Shown here piece after piece: positions 3,301-50,017 of a stretch of 64,000 nt of DNA (positions are counted from its first letter, which is position 1; each line of letters opens with the position of its first letter). The stretch comes from Podarcis melisellensis (taxonomy: Eukaryota), in NCBI GenBank assembly GCA_964234715.1, contig OZ174276.1. The stretch is one strand, 5' to 3'. The translations under genes were made by a program, and so were the position numbers. The notes under the pieces are model-generated. The model saw nothing but the letters and a program-made list of their open reading frames with translations. It made no database searches and was not told the origin of the DNA.

Positions 3301-6300
3301 CTAACTGCACACTTATTTGTGTCATTCTGAGATGCCCAGACGTGGCTGGTAACTGTCAGGAAGCACGCTTCATGCTTGATTCCCGATGAACTTCTGGCTT
3401 GCTGGCCGACGGCAAAAGTGGTTCCTGGCTTGCTGTGCAAGTTCAGGAATCGGTGAAGCATTCCTATATCGTTCTCCCTCTTGCTTTTCCTCTGCAGAGA
3501 CAGAAAAGCACGTATTCCACATACCCCAAGGCTGAGCCGACACCAGTCACCTCATCGGCTCCACCAGTCAACACCCTCTATTCCTCACCTGTGGTAAGTG
3601 CCCACCCGCTTGGGGAGATTTCCCCTATTGCTATTTAGACACTTCTCCCGTGTCATGAACATTCTGTGGTACTTTGGTAAGTCCAGCCAAGTCCATGGGA
3701 GAGGAAGAGAATGTGTGTTGGCTTTTCCTGTCACCTTGCTTCAGCAGCTCCTTCTGCTCACAAATCCCCTCATGCCATGAAGCTTGAAACAGGCAGCGTT
3801 TCAAGCTTGATCTCCTAAGAGAAGGGGAGGCAGTGGGGGAACCCATCTTTGCATGGGTGATTAATCCTGTAATATGTGTCTTATTTCAGAACTCCTCTGC
3901 ACCTCTGGCTGAGGACATTGACCCTGAGGTAAGACCCCCCGTCCCCATAAGCCATTTTGTAGTTTGCTGGTATCACCGACACCCTGGCTAGTGACAACCA
4001 GCTTGCTTCCTGTTTCCCAACATCTCCTTGCAGTTGGCTCGGTACCTGAACCGCAACTACTGGGAGAAGAAGCAGGAGGAGGTGCGCAAGAGCCCCACCC
4101 CTTCAGCCCCGCTATCCATGGGGGAGCCAGCAACCCAGAACACCGAGGTCCAGCCTGCCCCGCTCAGTGTGGTGGAGGTAAGAGCAGCCTTCCCTTTCTG
4201 TGTGTTCTTAGGATGCTCCACAGTAAGGCAGAATTAGGCTCAGCCGCTGGGTTTGTTTGGTTTTTTCCTGAAATGGTTGCCAACTGCTGTTTCTTTCTCC
4301 AATGTGAGCAGCGGGATTAAAGGAGGCCGGGCACGGAGTGCGGCAAGCTTTCTGTGCTGCATTTGAACAGTCTGGAGGTTTAAGGTTTTTACAGGAGATG
4401 CATCGCCTTGCAGGGAAACAGGACAGGGGTAACCCAAGGCAGCTGAAGCCACATTGAAAAATGAACTTGGTTGACTTAGTTGGAATTGCGCCTTCCAGTT
4501 AATGGTCTCCCCATCTCTCTCTGATGGTCTCCCCAGCAGCAATACCAAAACGGTGAGACAGACGAGAGCCACGACCAGTTCCTGAAGGCTCTGCAGAACG
4601 CCGTCACCACCTTCGTCAACCGCATGAAGAGCAACCACCTGCGGGGCCGGAGCATCACCAATGACTCCGCCGTGCTCTCGCTCTTCCAGTCCATCAACAG
4701 CATGCACCCTCAGCTCCTGGAGCTGCTGAACCAGTTGGATGAGCGCCGCCGTAAGTTCCCAGGGCCCCGGCCCTTAATGTGGGCAGAGGCCTGCGGGAGG
4801 AGCTTGTAGCACGGTTGGGATCACCTCTCTCCCCATTAAATCGTAGGCGGTTAATTGACTTCCTTGCGTTGAACCAAAATGGGCATTGGGGCTTCCTTTC
4901 CACTTTTTGGGGTGGGAAGGAAGGGAAGATGGCGTGATGCCTTTGGCCCATGCTGAGGAGTCTGCCCTGCTTTCCTCGAGGTGGGAGCTATACCTCCTGT
5001 GGATCTCACGGGGGTGGGGCTTCTGACAGCGCCTTTTTTCGCCCCTTCCCCCCCGACTAGTGTACTATGAGGGACTTCAAGATAAACTTGCCCAGATCCG
5101 GGATGCGCGGGGAGCCCTGAACGCTCTGCGGGAGGAACACAGGGAGAAGCTGCGCCGCGCTGCCGAGGAGGCCGAGCGCCAGCGCCAGATCCAGCTAGCC
5201 CAGAAGCTTGAGATTATGCGGCAGAAGAAACAGGTGAGGTGGCCGGTGCCAAGTGTGTCCGGTACAAAAGGTACATCTGCCCTCTGCAAAATGGTTTGCA
5301 AGTGGTGCAGCCTAGTAAAGCATGAAGCCCCATGGCTCCTGTGTTGTAACACATCCCATGTGCTTCTCCAACTTGTAGGAATACCTGGAGATGCAACGGC
5401 AGTTGGCGATCCAGCGCCTTCAGGAGCAAGAGAAGGAGCGCCAGCTGCGGCTGGAGCAGCAGAAGCAAACGATCCAAATGCGGGCCCAGATGCCTGCTTT
5501 CTCCTTGCCGTATGCTCAGGTATGACGGGTGGAGAGGCCGAGAATCCCTCCTCCTCTTCCCTTCCGTGGCTTCCAAGTCACCGTCCCTCTCTTAATCTGC
5601 TTCCTGTCTCTGTAGCTGCAGGCCATGCCTCCCGCTGGCGGGGTGATCTACCAGCCATCAGGCCCCACAAGCTTCCCAGGCACCTTCAGCCCAGCAGGCT
5701 CTGTGGAGGGCTCACCTATGCACACAGTCTACATGAGCCAGCCTGCCCAGGGCAGCACCGGACCGTACACTGCAATGCCTGTGGCAGGAACAGGTAAGAG
5801 CAATAGGATGGAGGGGGAATGTGTTAGCTGAAAGCACCTGAAACGGGATACCGGGTCTCGGAAGGCTGCCCTTTTCTCATATTTCACCTGTATTTCAGAT
5901 CCCAACATGGTGAGCACCTACATGTACTCAGCAAGCACTAATAATGCCCAGGCAGCTCCGCAAGGGCAGGCTGTGCCCACCACGAATCCTGCCTACTCTT
6001 CCTACCAACCTACACCTACCCAAGGCTACCAGGCAAGTTTGACCCACAGCCCAAATTTCCTCTGCCCCAAATCAGGCGATTAAATCCCAGCAGATTATAT
6101 GTGCTGCTGTGAAAGTGGAGGGGGGAAGAGTTCAAGCCAGTGTGGTGATGTCTTTAGTGTTTGACTAGGACGGAGAAGACCCAAATTCAAATCATTCTAG
6201 TGGTGATGCTTCTGTTATTATTTAGCTGAAGCACCTATTTTAAACCATTTTCGGAAGGGTAGCCAAATTAAGTCTGTTGCAGCAAAAATAACGGAGCCTT

Positions 6301-8126: not shown

Positions 8127-8361
8127 GTATTTAAAACTTTGTTTCAGTCTGTGCTTCCTCATAGGCCTTGGGTTAAAAGTTTCTGTCTCTGCAGAACTAG
8201 TTGGTGGGTTGTGACCTCCAGTGTATGCAACTGGGTACAGGAGGCATTTGTCATCCTGGGGCAGCACAGAGAATAGAATTCTTTAAAGCCATTCTGAAAA
8301 CGTTATTCCCCCCCCCCTTCCCCAAAGAAGCTGCAGAAGCATCTCCATTTCTTTTTCTTAA

Positions 8362-8367
8362 TTTAAT
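8362..8367 (-). terminator. Probable polyadenylation signal (ATTAAA) of the METTL26-like gene
   Basis: tttaat on the + strand reads ATTAAA on the - strand, about 60 nt after the TGA at 8426-8428. Confidence 0.5.
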
Positions 8368-8425
8368 TTCCACACCCATCCATATAAATAGGGCAGTCCT
8401 CCTTTGACTTTTCCGTAGCCAGAGA

Positions 8426-11400
8426 TCATAACTCCCTCCGCCGAAAGATCAAACATTTGGTGTATTCAGGCATCTCCAGCTGAGGAAGAAAAATAGGCGC
8501 CGAGTCATTGCATGAGGGAGGATGAGCAAAATGGAAGCCTATGGGAGGAACTGCAGAGCTGGTGGGATCCCCCTCCCCAGGAAACAAAGAGTGGGAAGTG
8601 GTGCTTGTGGTTTCTGCAGTTCTATTTCATTGCCCCCTACAATATTGTAGGCTGACCTCAGCCTCTTACCATGCGCTCGAGCCGCAGTGCATTAGTGTTT
8701 GCCAGTTGACGAAGCTCCTCCACATCCCTCAGTCCCCACTCAGGATTTCTGCCATTTTAAAAGTATAATGTGTTAAAATAGAACATGGCCTCATCACAAC
8801 AAAATCTTTAGAGCCTTTCCCAAGGAGGGAAAAACAGTAGGCTAAAGGCTAAACACAGTCTTTGCCTGTAGCTCATCTTCATCACCTAACACAATCTTGC
8901 CCTGTTGTCCATCTTCCATGCTATTACACAACAAGTAAATAGTGAGGAAATAAATCAATGGGAGCTTTCCAAGTAGCCTTCCCCCACCCCGCCTTGACCT
9001 CACTAGGCCTTTGGTGGTCACCACAAAGAAGACAAGAGATGTCCTTCAGCTCTAACATACCTGGCCTGGAGCATGTTATCCAGTTGCACATTGCACTCTG
9101 GAAGGATGATCCCATTAACGGCGAAGGGCTGTGGAGTGGAAGCAGAGTGGGAATTAACTCCGGGCCAGCATTCTATGGGGCTCTTAGGCCAAAGGTCTAG
9201 AATGAAGGCAACAAGCCTAACATCAGTGATCCTTGAGCAAGCCCCATTGAATTCAGTAGGATTTACTTCTGAGGAGGCATTGTGCTGTAAGACTCATGAG
9301 CACGGTCACGGAAGAGCAAGAAGTCTTGTGGCAGAACTGGATCAAAATATGAGCTGCTTTCCAACCTTAAGGTTCTCCTTTTCCATCAAGTTGGTGGTGG
9401 TGGATACTGCTTAGAGCTGGGCTTAGGTGCACAAAACTCTTACGCATCCGAGCAAAGCAATAAGCAGAAGCACTCGGCCTTCCTATTGGCTGATGTGGAG
9501 GGAGAGTGATCAATTCAAAGGCTCTCAACAACGAGCTGGTGGTCAGGCACTTTGAGAGCTGCACAAATCAAGACTTCTAGCAAGCCCCACCCATACCTAG
9601 ATGTAATGAAATAAGACCTTGCAGGTCAGATGGGGAATCCTGGCAAGCCCGGACTTTGCCTGTGATTGCCTTCCCACTGAGCTTAAGCTGTAATGGATGG
9701 TTTTCCTATACTCACCCCATAGGCCAAGCAAATGCCTCCAGGTTTCAGCAGTTGCCCTATGCCTTTAAACATTCCCTGTAACACAAAAGGTTATCTGTTG
9801 AATAAGTTCCTTTGCAGAGGTCAGTTTCCATAATATTGACCTAAGTGCTTTGTCATACCTCCAGGCCTTGATCAGTCATATGCAGCAGGTTAATAATAAT
9901 GATGAAGTCACAACAGCCTTGACTCAAGCCAGCCCACTGGTCCCATGGCTGTGTTACATCTATGGCAAGGGGTTCTCGGACATTGGTCACCTTGGTGGCT
10001 TGGATGTACGCAGAGATGCTGTGGGAAAAGATGGAAGATTATTATTTTTGTGTGTAAAGCCATAATAAAAAAAGGGGATAACTACTTTCTCCAGTTTCCT
10101 TCCCTCTGGCCCCACAAAAAAGCAGCACTGGGTTTGAAGTACAGTCAGGCAATATAGTGGGATGCTGAACCAGAGAAAGGCTAGACAAGGGTATGATATA
10201 TGCCTCCAACATTGATTCTCCAAGTTAAAGGGGTGGACACATTTTGATTTTTCCAAGTGACAGCGCTAAGATTTCAGATGTGACTGCTCTATGAATTATG
10301 GTCAGTGTAAATGACACAGGCACTCAATCCCATGTGTATGTGACGCTAGCAACAAGCAATACAGCACACTGACACAATCTCCCATGCCATTTTGTGCCCT
10401 TCAGTTTCTGTCCTCATCCCTCCCAACACCTCTTGGTGAGCAATGACTATTACAAATGTTATTGCTATTTGAAAAGGAATACCCCACACAACACCCTCTT
10501 TACTCCACCTGTTGACTTAAGCTGTTTGCGCCAGATGATTTTTGCACAGGCCAAGATGCCATCTACGAAATGCGGTTACAATTTTATCCTCACCCTTGTG
10601 CATGTTTTGCAAATTGTAAATTTCAGGAATAGCTAACAATAAAATAAAATGTAATGAAGGAACGTCTGGAAAAGCCCTTGGACGCTCGTCAACCGTTTGT
10701 TCATGTTTATCATACAACAACTCTAAAAAAATAATCCTCATTTCTCATACTGTAATCTAGTGCACATTAACCATGATAATTTTAATCTACCCACAATCCA
10801 CAGACCCAGGGGCTAAGCAGTCAAAGCGACACCAGGTATTAAAACCAAGTTTTTAAAAAATGCATCTACCTTGGCATATACTGTTTTATTGCCAGATTAT
10901 TCTATAGTCTAAAACAGGTTGCCACCAAGAAGTTCTCATTATTCCGTTCAAATGTACACATGCCGTTACTGCTTCAGCAGCAAGCCTTTCTTGCTTACCA
11001 AGAATATATGCACAGCTAGGATCTGTCCAATGCAGAACAGTCTAGCTATTTCTTGGAAAGGCATTTTCAGTCTACTGAACACAAGCTGCCATATGGTTTT
11101 TGACAGTCCCTTTTGGCTGACTATAAACAAGGACTAAGAGCCAGTTCTTTTTAGTGCAGATTTTGTGCCAACATTCTGCTGGGGCCAAGGCAAAGCATGG
11201 TCTACACGCCACTACAACACCCATCCCTTGCTGTCATCACAGGCCGCAGTGTACCTCTGTTGAGAAGCTGGGCTGATCTCTGAGGGTTGCCAGATGACCG
11301 TGGGCAAGGCCTGAGCAAAGTGCACCACATGCTGTCCTGTACCAGATCCCAGTTCAAGCCCAAAAGCTGAGCTTGTGTCATCCACATAGTCAGCCAGCAC

Positions 11401-11448
11401 CTCGAGGATGGTTTCCTTGTTTCTCTCAGCCATCGGTGAAACTAGCAT
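8426..11448 (-). CDS. Methyltransferase-like 26 family (DUF938, class I SAM-dependent methyltransferase), divergent METTL26B-like paralogue; 6 coding exons, 204 aa
   Basis: Minus-strand join 11448-11255, 10018-9859, 9775-9716, 9128-9061, 8748-8670, 8479-8426 (194+160+60+68+79+54 = 615 nt), all introns GT-AG, open throughout. Protein: MLVSPMAERNKETILEVLADYVDDTSSAFGLELGSGTGQHVVHFAQALPTVIWQPSEISPASQQSISAYIQATKVTNVREPLAIDVTQPWDQWAGLSQGCCDFIIIINLLHMTDQGLEGMFKGIGQLLKPGGICLAYGPFAVNGIILPECNVQLDNMLQARNPEWGLRDVEELRQLANTNALRLERMLEMPEYTKCLIFRRREL*. Family motifs: AERNK, LELGSGTGQH (SAM motif I), WQPS, YGPF, RNPEWGLRD, KCLIFR. Confidence 0.95.
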
Positions 11449-12899
11449 CTTTTCTGGAGATAGGCTGTTCTCTTCTCCTGGGATTTCTGTTTGCTTTCTG
11501 ATATCTCCAGCCCTACAATGATGCCCTAAGCTAGATTTATTAAAGCAAAGGAGATTACACTAAGATGCACTTGGCTACAGCAGGAAAGGCACGTGTTGCC
11601 CTTGCACCTGCAGCTCAGACAATCCTGCTGCAAGATTCAACACAATGTTTTCACTGAGATATTTTGTACAGACCTCTGAGCTGCGTGTCTGCTTCATACA
11701 CCTGATCTATTCTACAAAGTAGGCTGATCAAATACTCATCATGCTGCAATAAGATGATTGCCTTTTAAGGGACCACAGAATCCTGTTGTTTTTATTCAGA
11801 AACATGTTGCCTTTGGGATCTTGTTTCTGTTTGATTTTTTGTTAGATTTTATTTATACGCAAATGCAATACAGTAATACATAACTTTAACAGCATTACTA
11901 TACAAGATCACTTTTGTCTAGGAGTTTGTTTTGTGGGCTATTAAGATCATTGCCAGCTATTGGTAATAGGCTGGCTGCAATGCTCCTGAATCAGGAATGT
12001 GTTCTAAATCAACAGTGCTGAGACTTGCGACCATCACTCACTGTATAAGAGGTTAAGAAATGGAACTACTGAAACTAAAAAGTACAACTTCATTTTATTG
12101 TGAAGGATCACATTAATGCATGCTTGTCTAAAGAAAAAGGTTTTAGCAGGCATTGAAAAACAATACAAAAAGGCACCTTGTTGATAATACTGATAAAGCC
12201 TTCAGGGGGCAGGATGAGCTCAGCTGTGGGGCTTCTGGTGTGCAGCATTATTTGGGAGCTTTTCCCATGGAGTTCTTCATTTGTGGTGTCTGGTGGGCAA
12301 GTCTGTTTCTAAAAACTTTCAGTTCTTATCAGCATTGGCTAAAATCAAACTAATGCAAATCCTTGTCTCTGCATCTCTCCCACACAAAAAGCCCTTTGTT
12401 TCAAGAAGGCAGACTGGGTGAAACACAAAGCTAATTCTGGATCCAAGCCAAGTTAGACTGCACATATTTGTGTTCTGTACATATCCAGCACGCTGGTATA
12501 TATCAAATTACCAAAAAAAAATAGTCAGGACTAATTCTGTACATCACCAAAATCCATTTGGAGATTATTGTTTACTCAGTAGTAGGTCCCACTGAATCCA
12601 ATAGGGCTTGCTCCCAAGTGTTTCAAGGCTGCAGCCTTAGCTTAATTATCAGCTTTGTAAACAACCCGTGATTTGCTAGGCCGAATTTTAATTGTCAGCG
12701 GCCCCAGCGCCGTGCTGTTAGTATGTGCACTTAGTAATATAAAATTATGCCTTCCCAGCTTTTGAATCCCACCGGTCTCCTTGCTAAACGAATCAAACAA
12801 CCACCTCTGAAGAGCTCAGTGGCACGTTCCGGGAACACCATTTTACACCCATTTTACAGTTTACACCGCCTCCATTCCACGGGCTCCAAACGCTCCTTC

Positions 12900-13620
12900 C
12901 TCTTCCCGCGCAAAGAAAACACCCTCCCAAATCCCGCGCGACTTCCGCCGTTGCTAACAAACGCGTCTGCAGCCACCGCCGAGCGCAGCAACGCCTACCA
13001 TAGAGTCTTCCTCCCTAGCGCGGCATTATGTAAAGGTGGGAAGCGGCCCTAACGTCACCTCCGTCAACCACGGAGATGCACGGCGGGCCGCCTAGAGCGC
13101 CGTCGATCGAACTCGGCCGCGATAGGTGCACCCCGCTGGATCAGAGAGAAAGAGCGGGCAGAGCGTTCCCTCGGCGTCCTCTGCCGCTCGCACGCCGGAG
13201 ACAGAGGAGAGCGCCGGTGTGTCTCCGTCCTGCCCGCCTCCTGGAGCTGCCGCCATGGCCATGTTGCCCGCGGGCCGGCTCGGGACCGCTATCCGCCTGC
13301 TGCTGCGGTATGCAAGAGGCGGGAGGTGGGCTGGGCGGTTCCTCGGGGCGCCGAGGGGCCCGAAAGAGGTCGAGGTTAGGCGAGTTCACGTGCCAAACTC
13401 CCAGCGGAATCCCGCCTCTCCCGCGTGAGGGATGAGGCGCCCACGCGCGCTTACTCCGCCGTGAAATGTTCAAAGCTGCTTCGGGTGCTTCCCGTTTGGT
13501 GGTGCCCGCAGCAGCTCTGAAAGGCGGGCCGCCCTCGCTAACCCCAAATCACCATCGAGGGCGCGAAGCTGGTGGTGGCAAGTTTGCCGAAGGCCGACCT
13601 GCTGGTTTTTATGGCTGAGG
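12900..13620. promoter_or_regulatory. CpG island / probable bidirectional promoter (MRPL12 on +, METTL26-like gene on -)
   Basis: CpG-dense, GC-rich tract containing the MRPL12 start. It has an ETS/GABP-type site (acttccg, 12941), an E2F-like tcccgcgc and a CRE half-site acgtca (about 13052). The METTL26-like ATG is about 1.5 kb away in divergent orientation. Confidence 0.8.
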
Positions 13621-16600
13621 CGAGACTTAAAACCAGAAACGTCCTGCTTCCTGGCTCCTGCTTTTAGTCAGAAGGCTAGGAGTGGGTAGGAGCTTAAAAC
13701 TGAACGAAGGATGGGGTTCCCAAGGGTCATCTAGTCCAACCCCCTGCAACACCACTGGCCAGTTTCTGCTGGACAACCTAGTGCTATCTCTGCAGGTGTC
13801 GTCCCCCCCCCTTGTTCTCAATATCCACTTTCCAGTCACAAACAGCAAGTTTGAGAAATAGTCCGGGTAGAATCGGAAGATAGAAGCTGTGAACTGTCTG
13901 GACCGTTTTTGACAAAAAACTGTAGATTAGCTGGCTCTTGATCTGTTCCAAGGTAATTTTTATGTTTATAAATAAGAAGGCACATTTGAGATTACTTAAG
14001 CCTTATTAAGATATGAATATACATTCTTGCTTTGTGGAGCAGAGGACTTCCTTTTTGAAAATTAGAGTAGACCATACAAGATTGAAGTCAGTCCACCCTG
14101 CACTTCACCTGCTCTGTTGACAACTATCTGCTCTTGAGTTATCCCACTGTGGAGCTCACAGTGCGAAAACAAATTTCTTTATACCTCATGTTGGAAAACA
14201 CTTCAAGCTTTTAAAAATGCCTTTTAGTAATATGGACATTCTGAAGGAAATCAGCCCTGAGTGCTCACTGAAAGGACAGATCCTGAAGCTGAGGCTCCAA
14301 TACTTTGGCCACCTCATGAGAAGAGAAGACTCCCTTGAAAAGACCCTGATGTTGGGAAAGATGGAGGGCACAAGGAGAAGGGGACGACAGAGGACGAGAT
14401 GGTTGGACAGTGTTCCAGAAGCTACCAACATGATTCTGACCAAACTGCGGGAGGCAGTGGAAGACAGGAGTGCCTGGCGTGCTCTGGTCCATGGGGTCAC
14501 GAAGAGTCGGACACGACTAAACAACAACAATAATATGGACATCTCCTTACATTTGTTTTTAAAATTACACTACAGTTTTGTCGCTGCCAAGAGGTGTTGC
14601 TTCTTCCCCTTTTCCACAGCACCTACACCAAACCATGTTTATATCACCCTTTCTTCTCACTTGGTTGGCCTTGCTGTTTCTCCTGAAGCACATCTGTTCT
14701 CATTTTTTCGTTCATTTGCTGCTTGCACAGGTCTTTATGTTGTGAACCATAAAGTGCTGACAAACTCTATGTTGATTTTTCTACAGGCAGCATCAGCCAC
14801 GAGCATGTGCTGTTAGGATGCTGAAGACTACCAGCTCACAGCGAAGTGAAGCCTTGGCAACTCCGCCTCTTGATAATGTTCCCAAGGAGTACTCGCCCAA
14901 GATTCAGCAGCTAGTTCAAGACATTGCCAGCCTCACCCTACTGGAGATTTCTGACCTCAATGAACTGCTGAAGGTGCCAATGTTTGCATGGGAAGCAGAG
15001 TGATTGCTGTACTAGGGAAAGATGGGGCAGCAGACAGCTCATTGTTGGTCATGTCTTTCTCTTTTTCTGTAACAGTGGGATGGGGTGCTTTGGAATTCCT
15101 TCCCCAACTTCTGTGATGCATACGATATATAAGAAGGCTTAATATTTCTCTAACACTCTTTTTCTTCAGAAAACCCTCAAGATCCAAGATATGGGACTCA
15201 TGCCAATGGCTGGGATGATGCCACCAGCACAAGCAGCAACTCCAGTAAGGGATCATCCTTTTTACTTGCTGTTTATTTGGGCTGAGTAGCAGCTGTAGCT
15301 GGGCAAATGTCTGAATGGAAAACTTCAGCAGCCCTACAAATGAGCATTCTGTTGAGAGAGTTGTGTGTGAAGGCACCAAAGTATTATATAACAGGCATGT
15401 TGATTGCTTGAGGCTGTTGGACTAAGCATGCAGCCAGCCTGTTAGTTCTGCTGCAGTGTCATGAAAAAGGTTGTTTCAGTGTTGCTAACTCATCAGATGA
15501 CATTTTCCTGGATGTTACTGGTGTATAACAAACTCAGCAACTGGAGATGGGAATGCAGGGGTGAGAAAAGTTCTCTGCTAATAGGGGTTGTGGTTGTGCT
15601 TGGTATCGCAATCATCTTGCCACATTTATTTATTTACATACCCTGTCTTATGAACTCTTAAGAAATAAGATGATCTAAAGAGTAAATAGCACTAATATCA
15701 GTGCAGTGGGCCTGCCACTTATGTGAGGTTCAGTTCCAGGGGTCCATGTGTAAAGGCAAAATCATGAGTAGTCTGTCCCTGAAAAAGAGGGTGCCATTGC
15801 ATCACATATTTTCAGGCCACTGCAACAATTTAAATCTAACACATGATGTGTTGGGCCTGCAATAACCAAGGATAACCCTGTCATTATTGTGGACATCACA
15901 AAGACCTGAGCTGCAGGTGATAGGGAAGCCTGGACATGGATGTTAAAACCCTTTACCTAAGATTGGGCAGATAGTTGTAATAACTCTTACTGCAGTTGAC
16001 ATCTCAGGGCTGATACTACATCCAGAATCAAGTTGGGAGCTGTTGGATCAAAACAGGTCTGCTTGAATTATGCACTGAGTTCTTAGTTCTATATTCCTGG
16101 TCAGTAGCGTTCACTAGAATTAAATACTCAGTGGTAGATGTTTTGTTGACAGTTGATTTGGCATTAATACGTTGCCCCTTGGCGCCTCACACACGCACAA
16201 ACAAATCCCACTGCAGCCAACCAAAGTCAGTCAACCACATCCTAGGCCATCCCAGCCTCTCACACCACCAAGGAAACATAACAAGCGAATAGAAAGAGAA
16301 CCTGTCCAAGTGACGCTGAAACAACCCCCCTCCCCCGCACACATGCTATGTCAAAGAACATGCACTTTACCATCCCACACCCCCTCTCCCATCCCCTCCC
16401 TCTTTTCTTCCCACTATAAGTTGCCCCTTGGGGCCACACCTTTCTGTGACCCATCCCCCTTATTAAGATTTTCTAAGTACCATGTCAAGACAGTCTTTAT
16501 AGTTGCTCTGTTTTGAGATCAACTTCCCATCACAAAAAAATGCAGGGATTTGCGTAAACTGCATGCAAACACTTCCAAAGCTGCCGGCAAGTGCTCCTTA

Positions 16601-18649
16601 AATGTGAAGATTTCCCCATCCAAGTCTCCTTTCTCAAAGGAGGTTACTTATACAACATTATGATACTTCTCCCTAGTAGCCTTAGATCAGCGTTTGCCAA
16701 CCTGGTGCCCTCCAGATGTCTTCGACTACAACTGCCATCTGGAGCTGTAGTCCAAAACATCTGGACAGCAGGAGGTTAGTGAAAGTTGCCTTACTGTATT
16801 ACATTGGTTAAGATCTTGAGCACCAGCTTTTTATTATTGGAAGTGGCCCACCACCTGTTTCCCATTGTGGACAATCAGAAGTTTCTGGTCCATATGCTGG
16901 GCCTTTCAAGTCAATAACAATTTGCCTGATATTACTTCCAGTAACTGATTAGATATGCTCATTGGGCCACTTCCAATAATAAAAAGCTGGTGTTCAATTA
17001 AGGCAAGGCTTTTGGGCTGACCTACTGTCTCTATTCCTTCATCATTAAAGGAGAACTAGCATAGATGGTGAGATGTTTTAATCTTCTTTCTAGCTTACTG
17101 TTGATTTTGATCAACTCTTAAATGTTTTAACTACTTGCTTCTAACTTTTCATTGATGGTTTTCATTTCTTGTAAACCGCATAACAGTTTTGTTGCAGTCA
17201 AGTGCTATATACATTATGGTTAAATAAAAATAAAGATTCAGCAATGGTCTTGCAGCCCAACACAAGAATTTAGGGGAAATAATGAAGGAGTAGCTGGTGC
17301 AAGTTTTGTTAGATCTTCCCTCTGTATTTGGTACTTTGGTACTACCATTGGCTAATGAAACTTCAGGGGTGTGAGGGTCAGGCTCCTGTTGCCAATTGTG
17401 AGTGGGCTTTTATCTTTTTTGCTAGGAAGCTGAAGAGGATTTTGTCCCCAAGAAGCCGGAGAAGATAAATTTTACAGTCAAGTTGACTGAATTGAATGCT
17501 GCAGATAAGGTGAAACTTATCAAGGAGGTGAAGAATTGTATGCAAGGCTTAAACCTTGTCCAGGTAAGCAGATGGTGCTCAAGGCTGACTTAACAGGTGA
17601 ATGTGCTAAAGGCTTGAGGGAGGCAAGTTTCCTTTTACTTGTGCCATACAGAACTTAATTATCAAGTAGCCCCATCTACTTGGGCTACTTTTGTGCATTT
17701 AATGGTGGTGCAAGTACCTCCTTGCTCTCTGCCTCTTGTCTGATATATCCACAAGAGGTCTGCAGTCAGTACTTAGGGCAAATGCACATTTTGCTTGACC
17801 TGTACTTTGATTGTATTGTGTACCAATTTATTCCCCTGGGTCTGGGAGCTTTTCTTTTTCTGTGGCTGTGCCTTCTGAAAATCTGCTCCTACCTGCTGAA
17901 TTAAAGCTCTGTTAAGCAAAATTTCTCTTTGGATTTTCTGCGCATCAAAAAAGATCTGAGTCAGGGGGAAAGATCGAATTTTCACAAGGCACAGTCACAG
18001 AACAATGAGAAAAGCCCATGGACCTTTAAGCAGTACATGGTAATCAGGGGAAATTAATCAGTACACAATACAGGTCAGGTGAAGAGTGGATGAGCCCTTG
18101 GTCATACCACTTGGGGGCAGCAAATTACAAAGAGATGAGCTGCCAAAGTAATGTTCACATGAGGAAAGTGAGGAGCTAATGCAGAGTTAGTGGAAGCGAA
18201 TTTGCATCCTTTGAGATAGTACCAGCTAGTGTGGCAAGTCCCTTGCGAATCATGATGCTCCAAAGAGGATTCTTCTAAGCATTTGGACTCTGGTCAGAAA
18301 TGGCTTACTGTTTCTTGCCAGGAACTTGGCCAGCTGAAAATTAATACTGCCGCTTCAGCCTAGGAAACGCTTCTGCTTGGCTCATCTTCTAGGCTGCGTG
18401 ATCTGCCAAGTGGGGAGATAGGGGCGAAGTCACAGAGGGTCCCATACTAGTGGGAGCAGGCAGCAGCAGCTTCTTGGGTTCAGCGTTATCCCTTTCCGTG
18501 GCTAACTGGAGTGGCTCTCTTATCTCTTGCAGGCGAAAAAGTTGGTAGAGTCTCTTCCTCAAGAGATCAAGGCACACGTCTCTAAAGAGGAAGCAGAGAA
18601 AATCAAAGCTGCTCTGGAGGCAGCAGGAGGGACTGTCGTTCTGGAGTAA
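13255..18649 (+). CDS. MRPL12: Mitochondrial ribosomal protein L12 (bL12m); 5 exons, 189 aa
   Basis: Join 13255-13307, 14787-14973, 15170-15244, 17426-17563, 18533-18649 (570 nt, in frame). It has an Arg/Leu-rich presequence ([30 protein letters not shown]), then [92 protein letters not shown]. Strong Kozak gccgccATGg; a second in-frame ATG lies at 13261. Confidence 0.97.
14240..14530 (+). mobile_element. BovB (RTE) LINE 3' fragment in MRPL12 intron 1
   Basis: Encodes the BovB RT C-terminus ([53 protein letters not shown]), ends in a (CAA)n tail, and has a 12-bp TSD taatatggacat at 14228-14239 and 14531-14542. Confidence 0.93.
16688..16789. mobile_element. Short palindromic non-autonomous DNA element (gactacaact..tgtagtcc family)
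   Basis: Internal inverted core tccagatg..gactacaact / agctgtagtcc..catctgga, shared with the copies at 41750 and 53124. Confidence 0.6.
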
Positions 18650-23659: not shown

Positions 23660-24393
23660 TTGTTGTTGTTTAGTCATGTCCAACACTTCATGACCCCATG
23701 GACCAGAGCACGCCAGGCACTCCTGTCTTCCACTGCCTCCTGCAGTTTGGTCAGACTCATGTTCGTAGCTTTGAGAACACTGTCCAACCATCTTGTCCTC
23801 TGTCGTCCCCTTCTCCTTGTGCCCTCCATCTTTCCCAGCATCAGGGTCTTTTCCAGGGAGTCTTCTCTTCTCATGAGGCGGCCAAAGTTTTGGAGCCTCA
23901 GCTTCAGGATCTGTCCTTCCAGTGAGCACTCAGGGCTGATTTCCTTCAGAATGGATCGGTTTGATCTTCTTGCAGTCCATGGGACTCTCAAGAGTCTCCT
24001 CCAGCACCATAATTCAAAAGCATCAATTCTTCGGCGATCAGCCTTCTTTATGCTCCAGCTCTCACTTCCATACATCACTACTGGGAAAACCATAGCTTTA
24101 ACTATACCGACCTTTGTCGGCAAGGCGATCTCTGCTTTTTAAGATGCTGTATAGGTTTGTCATTGCTTTTCTCCCAAGAAGCAGGCATCTTTTAATTTTG
24201 TGACTGCTGTCACCATCTGCAGTGATCATGGAACCCAAGAAAGTAAAATCTCTCACTACCTCCATTTCTTCCCCTTCTATTTGCCAGGAGGCGATGGGAC
24301 CAGTTTTTTTGTTTTTTGTTTGATGTTGAGCTTCAGACCATATTTCGCGCTCTCCTCTTTCACCCTCATTAAAAGGTTCTTTAATTCCTCCTC
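23660..24393 (-). mobile_element. BovB (RTE) LINE 3' fragment immediately upstream of the SLC25A10 promoter
   Basis: ORF 23674-24123 (-) is the BovB RT C-terminus (KAMVFPVVMYGSESWSIKKADRRRIDAFELWCWRRLLRVPWTARRSN). (TTG)n tail at 23660; 9-bp TSD cctatctat at 23651-23659 and 24394-24402. Confidence 0.93.
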
Positions 24394-24429: not shown

Positions 24430-25330
24430 TGGGCGGGGGGGGGGGGGCGAGGAACTGTGTGTGAATTTTCAACGAAGCAGTCAGCAGCAGCTTGGCTGCT
24501 CGATTTAAACAGAGCCGGGATTTCCTTCCAGATTAGCCATGATCTTGGCGGGCAGCGGAGATCAGCGGCGCCCGACGCTGCAGAATCCGTCGTCGAAAAG
24601 TGATTGTCCAGAAGCCGGAATGCGCGGGGGCGGACAAAGACGGGGGCTCCGCCTGAGCGGAGGAAGGCTGCGTACCCTCTCCCGGTTACTCTCCCTCCCC
24701 GGTACACCCAGCCGGGCCTCCGCGTTGCTCTTTTAAGGCGTCCCTCCCATGGCGGGCGTTGCCCCTTTAAGACCTCGTCGGTTCAGCGCAGGGAGCGGCG
24801 GCGGTGAGCAGGAGGAGGCGGCGGCCGGGCTTCCCGGGTCCGTGCAGCGGGGAGGTGAGGAGCAGCAGCAGCCACGCAGAGCCGGCGGCGCGATGGTGGA
24901 GAAACGTGTGTCCCGCTGGTACTTCGGAGGCCTGGCCTCGTGCGGGGCAGCCTGCTGCACCCACCCGCTAGACCTGCTCAAGGTGCGTCTTTGCGTTAGA
25001 GAAACCCGCCAGGAAGGAAGACGGGGCACCCCTTTCCCCGGCGACGGATGGGGGGACCTGGCCCCTAAAATCCCTCTCCGGCCCTCTGCCTCCCGTCTTC
25101 CCCCTGGGCTCCCCTGCGCTGATCTTTGCTGGCCCCATCCCTGCTAGTTGTCTCTCGCCGCCCCCTCCGCTTCAATATTGCCGCGTGTTTCCTTTGCAGC
25201 TTGGGAATTCCTTGCGCCGCTTCCTTCCCCCGCTTGGCTGCAGGCAAAGGTGGCTCAACAGCAAAGTGCTCTAAGGAGAGGTTCTTCACCTCTAACCTAC
25301 CATTTACGTCTAAGGCAGCGCGAGCGACGG
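24430..25330 (+). promoter_or_regulatory. CpG island promoter of SLC25A10
   Basis: CpG-dense tract with ccggaa and a GC box ggggcgg (about 24615-24633) and TTTAA boxes at about 24732 and 24766, upstream of exon 1. Confidence 0.8.
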
Positions 25331-49454: not shown

Positions 49455-50017
49455 AATCATAGAATCATAGAATCATAGAGCTGGAAGAGACCACAAGGGC
49501 CATCGAGTCCAACCCCCTGCCAAGCAGGAAACTCTATCAGAACACTCCTGACATATGGTTGTCAAGCCTCTGCTTAAAGACCTCCAAAGAAGGAGACTCC
49601 ACCACACTCCTTGGCAGCAAATTCCACTATCGAACAGCTCTTACTGTCAGGAAGTTCTTCCTAATGTTTAGGTGGAATCTTCTTTCTTGTAGTTTGGAAC
49701 CATTGCTCCGTGTCCGCTTCTCTGGAGCAGCAGAAAACAACCTTTCTCCCTCCTCTATGTGACATCCTTTTATATATTTGAACATGGCTATCATATCACC
49801 CCTTAACTTCCTCTTCTCCAGGCTAAACATGCCCAGCTCCCTTAGCCGTTCCTCATAAGGCATCGTTTCCAGGCCTTTGACCATTTTGGTTGCCCTCCTC
49901 TGGACACGTTCCAGTTTGTCAGTGTCCTTCTTGAACTGTGGTGCCCAGAACTGGACACAGTACTCCAGGTGAGGTCTGACCAGAGCAGAATACAGTGGCA
50001 CTATTACTTCCCTTGAT
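49455..50017 (-). mobile_element. CR1 LINE 3' fragment with intact ORF2 C-terminus
   Basis: ORF 49627-50001 (-) reads [62 protein letters not shown]; (ATTCTATG)n tail at 49455-49480. Confidence 0.95.

Follow-up and report, generated by a model that had tools for sequence, protein, structure and literature searches.

What is the methyltransferase-like gene that lies between HGS and MRPL12 in the lizard Podarcis melisellensis, and how does it relate to METTL26, the canonical vertebrate member of its family? We examined a stretch of 64,000 nucleotides from contig OZ174276.1 (NCBI GenBank assembly GCA_964234715.1), which we refer to as the window, in which positions 8426–11448 of the minus strand had been proposed, from the letters alone, to hold a METTL26 paralogue. 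Taken as a whole, the evidence is best explained if METTL26B, the second of two METTL26 paralogues of ancient vertebrate origin, has its lizard orthologue in this stretch, a reading in which we place high confidence. It draws on an intact gene structure, placement in a fully supported clade, and a shared gene neighborhood.

An intact six-exon gene

The initial annotation described six minus-strand exons with GT–AG boundaries that splice into a 204-amino-acid protein of the DUF938/METTL26 family, and this model was confirmed by reading the sequence, by translating each exon, and by colinear Pfam matches. Tests on the window gene were run exon by exon or through orthologous proteins used as proxies, namely residues 53–191 of P. 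muralis XP_077780246.1 (equivalent to window exons 2–6) and, for the fold, the Salvator orthologue. Coding exon 1 (11255–11448, 194 nt) opens with the ATG at 11448–11446, contributes residues 1–64 and two bases of codon 65, and encodes both S-adenosylmethionine (SAM)-binding motif I (LELGSGTGQH) and the motif WQPSE. The same strand continues with exon 2 (9859–10018, 160 nt), which when read and translated also matches DUF938, exon 3 (9716–9775, 60 nt), exon 4 (9061–9128, 68 nt), exon 5 (8670–8748, 79 nt), and exon 6 (8426–8479, 54 nt), which closes with the stop codon TGA at 8428–8426. The 3′ untranslated region (UTR) extends at least over 8379–8425, as a spliced contig from public sequencing run X1 reaches position 8379.

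The six exons make up an intact minus-strand gene for a protein of 204 amino acids. All five introns begin with GT and end with AG, the codons split at exon joints read AG|C (Ser) and AG|A (Arg), and the summed exons amount to 615 nt, or 204 codons plus the stop, with no internal stop in the in-frame translation of any exon. Exon 1 alone matches the Pfam family DUF938 (PF06080) with E=2e-17 and 64 bits (cut-off 27), and every exon matches the family, the matches running in order over profile positions 3–60, 65–113, 120–139, 140–161, and 163–188 of 202. When orthologous 26B proteins were aligned to the window by tblastn, the aligned blocks were exactly the six exons. A processed pseudogene was ruled out by the presence of introns.

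Placement among METTL26 paralogues

In a comparison of exon 1 with 1.8 billion representative proteins, relatives that are 81%–95% identical came before fish proteins, which in turn came before canonical METTL26. A turtle relative used as query (residues 50–256) found 1666 proteins, the top ones named “methyltransferase-like 26 B” (the NCBI RefSeq name) or Zgc:103625 (a name in Ensembl/ZFIN style); the hosts of proteins named 26B include turtles, many lizards, lungfish, coelacanth, bichir, sturgeon, paddlefish, gar, teleosts, and Callorhinchus. Varanus, Elgaria, Pogona, Latimeria, and Chanos each have a separate “methyltransferase-like 26” besides 26B. Measured by tblastn, the window exons are 77%–100% identical to reptile 26B but only 37%–64% identical to lizard canonical METTL26, and for exon 1 the contrast is between 80%–95% identity to lizard 26B and 51%–54% to canonical METTL26. 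Protein identity with P. muralis XP_077780246.1 is 100% across exons 2–6, with exon 2 corresponding to its residues 53–105, and exon 6 is 100% identical to the C-termini of turtle and lizard proteins (LEMPEYTKCLIFRRREL).

A maximum likelihood tree of 56 proteins (LG+G4), in which the window was represented by the P. muralis proxy, places all B-named proteins on one side of a branch of length 0.4 with support of 100/100, and the proxy falls inside the lizard subclade of 26B (support 100/98). The 26B clade excludes canonical METTL26 of mammals, snakes, lizards, fishes, and elasmobranchs; human METTL26 proteins were left out of the analyses. The support for this clade, together with the occurrence of both copies in the same species, sustains the earlier proposal of a second vertebrate paralogue that is distinct from canonical METTL26. 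The accompanying description of the gene as a novel element is not supported, because NCBI uses the name “methyltransferase-like 26 B” in many reptiles and fishes, including for P. muralis XP_077780246.1. METTL26B is already annotated and named in RefSeq, also in the nearest species, and the window adds no new kind of element. A literature search found no paper mentioning mettl26b or zgc 103625.

A gene neighborhood shared across bony vertebrates

METTL26B stands tail-to-tail with HGS and head-to-head with MRPL12. On one side is a convergent plus-strand HGS exon at 5060–5233 (Hrs_helical, Pfam PF12210, E=2e-11), and on the other are divergent plus-strand MRPL12 exons at 14779–14979 (Ribosomal_L12_N) and 17432–17578 (Ribosomal_L12), detected by tblastx against the Elgaria MRPL12 region and by Pfam, with a plus-strand Mito_carr exon of SLC25A10 at 24884 (Pfam). 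This arrangement matches that in Emys, Elgaria, Paroedura, Acipenser, and Chanos, where Mito_carr (SLC25A10), Ribosomal_L12 (MRPL12), DUF938, and VHS/FYVE/Hrs_helical (HGS) occur in the same order and orientations. The location between HGS and MRPL12 was thus correctly assigned at the outset, and the shared order in a turtle, two lizards, a sturgeon, and a teleost identifies it as ancestral: The gene already held this position in the common ancestor of bony vertebrates, if not earlier.

The canonical copy is found elsewhere. In the same Elgaria assembly, it lies on another chromosome (CM068570.1), between FAM195 and WAP/Ig/Kunitz/NTR (WFIKKN-like) genes, a neighborhood that is paralogous in type to that of METTL26B. 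The skate “26” gene adjoins a Ras/SOCS-box (RAB40-like) gene and not MRPL12 or HGS, which is consistent with a canonical-type position without proving it. We take human METTL26 to be flanked by MCRIP2 and WFIKKN1 at 16p13.3, and HGS, MRPL12, and SLC25A10 to lie at 17q25.3. The 16p13.3 and 17q25.3 regions have long been held to be paralogous. The two paralogues would probably descend from the early vertebrate genome duplications, the canonical gene in a 16p13.3-type and 26B in a 17q25.3-type neighborhood.

The window also contains repeat-like open reading frames (ORFs). Two of them, at 14217–14816 (plus strand, in the MRPL12 region) and 23674–24123 (minus strand, upstream of SLC25A10), share a long motif and look to us like two copies of the tail of a long interspersed element (LINE), presumably BovB/RTE-like. 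A further ORF of 124 amino acids at 49627–50001 (minus strand) resembles the C-terminal end of a reverse transcriptase from a CR1-type LINE.

Distribution and probable losses

Among the best 120 of the 1666 relatives of the turtle protein, there is no 26B from a mammal, bird, crocodilian, snake, or amphibian, and canonical METTL26 of snakes, marsupials, and monotremes is present within the same 120. Loss of 26B is the likely explanation because orthologues from such groups should score at least as high as those of lungfish or coelacanth. Judged by these protein matches, mammals likely lost the B copy, as other tetrapod lines probably did. The initial annotation had the gene kept in squamates and lost in mammals. 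The mammalian part agrees with the matches, in which only canonical-type proteins were found for mammals, but “kept in squamates” was too narrow, as turtles keep 26B and no snake 26B was found among those 120 matches. The statement that the human HGS–MRPL12 interval lacks a METTL26-type gene belongs to the initial annotation and has general knowledge as its basis.

Selective constraint

METTL26B is under strong purifying selection. Nei–Gojobori counts summed over the in-frame parts of the six exons gave ratios of nonsynonymous to synonymous substitution (dN/dS) of 0.085 against Emys, 0.082 against Elgaria, and 0.097 against Paroedura; functional constraint, for which a ratio near 1 had been named as the opposing outcome, is thus upheld by values of 0.08–0.10. 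In the comparisons with Elgaria and Paroedura, constraint is strongest on exon 1, with proportions of nonsynonymous (pN) and synonymous (pS) differences of 0.021 and 0.41 against Elgaria; against Emys, exons 5 and 6 have a lower pN than exon 1. Two differences between the window and contigs of related organisms, at 8685 and 8727 in exon 5, fall at third codon positions and are synonymous. The window exons have all 24 columns that are invariant when 43 sequences of the two paralogues are aligned, among them motif I as LE-x-x-SG-x-GQH (E-x-G-S-G-x-G-Q-H), W-Q-P-S-E, and the W..W, N, P..GL.D, and C..F columns.

One column that differs between lineages is that of His111, in the I-N-x-x-H motif after strand 4, where reptile 26B and all canonical METTL26 proteins have His but teleost METTL26B has Gln (INLLQY). 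The change may reflect a functional shift in teleosts.

Transcripts and upstream exons

Evidence on splicing came from contigs of four public runs, X1 and X2 (organism A), X4 (organism B), and X5 (organism C), for which the tissue is not stated. Contigs of X1, X2, and X5, with sequences 90%–99% like the window, contain the joints 8479|8670, 8748|9061, 9128|9716, and 9774|9858, corresponding to removal of introns 5, 4, 3, and 2, so that exons 3, 4, and 5 have both of their flanking joints. Read on the plus strand, these four joints are CT..AC, and exons 2–6 are covered at depths of 7–30. We take these runs as RNA because spliced contigs at such depths are hard to account for otherwise. Of the five introns for which junctions had been sought, introns 2–5 are therefore backed by splicing in X1, X2, and X5, but intron 1 was not seen spliced.

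The gene model of the initial annotation missed upstream non-coding exons and transcripts that skip the ATG exon, both of which are evident from a contig of run X2 and from the P. muralis isoform X2. The loose end of the run X2 contig, at 10020, was placed at 12179–12208 with two mismatches and no chance placements expected. It marks the 3′ end of a minus-strand non-coding exon, here called exon 0 (3′ part at 12177–12208; donor GT at 12176–12175; ending in CAACAAG), from which the reading frame into exon 2 is closed by stops. A second upstream exon on the same strand, exon A (12858–13009; donor GT at 12857–12856), was located by tblastn of residues 2–52 of P. muralis isoform X2 (90% identity) and is the source of the first 52 residues of that RefSeq isoform. 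Its frame in the window reads W* where P. muralis has WQ; because of this stop we take exon A as 5′ UTR without conserved coding, and the isoform X2 N-terminus was rejected as real coding sequence. METTL26B is transcribed and spliced. Its transcription also begins at non-coding leader exons, and where the ATG exon is left out, as in some transcripts, the enzyme cannot be encoded.

Exons 0 and A lie inside or at the edge of a CpG island (~12.5–13.75 kb) that separates METTL26B on the minus strand from MRPL12 on the plus strand. The island (12501–13750) has a GC content of 0.48–0.67 and an observed/expected CpG ratio of 0.85–1.10, versus 0.1–0.3 in the flanks, and the start of MRPL12 is on its opposite strand. 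It is likely a shared bidirectional promoter of METTL26B and MRPL12.

Two further features of the contig data are recorded here. Contigs of all four runs cover 9235–9280, and a similar stretch at ~12570–12610, at high depth, flanked on either side by unlike letters; this marks an interspersed repeat resembling a short interspersed element, inside intron 3 of METTL26B. Run X4 yielded a 1339-nt unspliced contig at depth 49.5 that is colinear with exons 6 and 5 and introns (8200–8995) and extends below 8200. Its source may be either a long HGS 3′ UTR that overlaps the end of METTL26B in antisense or a DNA or capture library.

Predicted fold and function

An AlphaFold model of the Salvator orthologue, which is 77%–100% identical to the window per exon, was obtained with high confidence (mean predicted local distance difference test score 94.2; predicted template modeling score 0.90). 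It shows the alternating beta/alpha core and seven-strand sheet of a class I Rossmann-like methyltransferase, and its fold matches in the PDB include at least 500 methyltransferases at E≤0.001. The closest are sarcosine/dimethylglycine N-methyltransferase, DnrK, MfnG, RebM, MitM, and CouO/NovO, with template modeling scores of 0.7–0.8. The predicted fold of METTL26B is that of a compact class I Rossmann-type methyltransferase. On this modeling, the product would be an active SAM-dependent methyltransferase, and, since small-molecule O-, N-, and C-methyltransferases are its closest neighbors among solved folds, a small molecule or short peptide end would be a more likely substrate than RNA or DNA.

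Weighing the alternatives

How well does the METTL26B reading withstand other explanations of the locus? The window gene might be the only copy in its genome, a canonical METTL26 relocated in squamates: It has the same Pfam family and length, and of this genome only the 64-kb window was covered. However, lizards of several families carry both 26B and canonical 26, and in one Elgaria assembly the two copies sit on different chromosomes among different neighbors; for related lizards a relocated single copy is refuted by the presence of both. With the 100/100 support for the 26B clade, the low exon identity to lizard canonical METTL26, and a position common to sturgeon and teleost also standing against it, relocation is scarcely credible. 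Several observations do weigh against the reading as METTL26B or against parts of it. The canonical METTL26 group is not one resolved clade in the tree and Callorhinchus has a long branch, for which reason the date of the duplication is inferred and not shown. That 26B is absent from mammals, birds, crocodilians, snakes, and amphibians is a result drawn from the best 120 database matches, not from genome searches. Runs X1, X2, and X5 were only guessed to be RNA. The joint between exons 1 and 2 (11255 to 10018) occurs in no contig of the four runs, exon 1 has the same depth as intron 1 (1–5 in X1, X2, and X5), and low-depth contigs read through their border unspliced. In addition, a 906-nt contig of run X2 joins exon 2 directly to the non-coding exon ending at 12177, and P. 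muralis isoform X2 skips exon 1. With exon 2 joined upstream and its joint to exon 1 missing, a full-length mRNA in lacertids is unproven from these runs. As to function, the fold neighbors are only 12%–20% identical and generic for small class I methyltransferases, a PDB sequence search found no sequence-related solved structure (best E=0.064), and a 2021 evolutionary survey and two 2026 papers report no activity or substrate for any DUF938/METTL26 protein.

The transcript observations would fit a lacertid locus that is turning into a mainly non-coding or truncated-product one, in which transcripts driven by the MRPL12-shared promoter omit the ATG exon and little or no full-length enzyme is made: Exon 2 is joined to exon 0 in run X2 and to exon A in P. 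muralis, the frame of the former is closed and that of the latter holds a stop in the window, and exon 1 is covered no more deeply than an intron. Such drift is very unlikely given that all six exons are intact with every invariant residue in place, that exon 1 is the most constrained exon in both lizard comparisons, that exons 2–6 are identical to the P. muralis protein, and that the two related-organism differences are synonymous. The samples are also few and of unstated tissue, and contigs drop minor isoforms; those of X1 and X5 stop right at the 5′ boundary of exon 2, a pattern to be expected with competing upstream exons. A different possibility is that METTL26B is a pseudo-methyltransferase, a non-catalytic protein that binds SAM or acts as a scaffold, in keeping with the lack of reported activity for METTL26/DUF938 and with the replacement by Gln of the I-N-x-x-H His in teleost 26B. 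We consider this unlikely, as both paralogues have kept motif I and the acidic residue after strand 2 with little or no variation for more than 400 million years, and the predicted fold and pocket-forming elements match those of active small-molecule methyltransferases. The locus is thus best read as METTL26B, an ordinary gene that is already annotated and whose evolutionary interest is modest.

Implications

Few human METTL proteins still lack a known substrate, and METTL26 is one of them; a second, strongly constrained copy occupies a fixed position beside MRPL12 in many vertebrates and has apparently been dropped by mammals. This offers comparative and genetic handles on the METTL26 substrate, through zebrafish zgc:103625 and lizard tissues. 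To what was already annotated, the present analysis adds the ancestral MRPL12-side position, the strong constraint, the upstream non-coding exons, and, unexpectedly, the missing evidence for inclusion of the ATG exon in a few lacertid runs. A bolder view, which we regard as doubtful, is that METTL26B is a functionally distinct ohnologue with its own substrate, perhaps a metabolite, that mammals, archosaurs, snakes, and amphibians each lost independently and whose output in lacertids depends on whether transcripts from the MRPL12-shared promoter include or skip the ATG exon. If it were true, the substrate of the METTL26 family would best be sought in species that have both copies, such as zebrafish and lizards.

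Comparison with known systems

The small-molecule class I SAM methyltransferases represented by sarcosine/dimethylglycine N-methyltransferase (2o57), DnrK (1tw2), RebM (3bus), and CouO/NovO (5m58/5mgz) share with METTL26B the Rossmann-like seven-strand core and the SAM pocket. Many of them carry extra N-terminal dimerization or substrate-lid domains, which the 204-amino-acid METTL26B lacks, and there is no evidence of a substrate common to METTL26B and these enzymes. Canonical METTL26 (C16orf13, JFP2) is much closer, with the same DUF938 family, fold, and length, ~50% identity, and the same 24 invariant residues. It differs in forming a separate clade, in its FAM195/WFIKKN-type neighborhood, in its presence in mammals, and in motifs such as MPANNKCLIF and TPQSNVDFD, where 26B has MPEYTKCLIF and LPECNVQLD. 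Other reptile 26B proteins are 203–207 amino acids long and have the exon structure found in the window. The closest counterpart is METTL26B of P. muralis. The entry compared, isoform X2, differs in that exon 1 is replaced by a 52-amino-acid upstream frame that bears a stop in the window, but it is the same gene, alike in its position between MRPL12 and HGS and identical in the protein encoded by exons 2–6.

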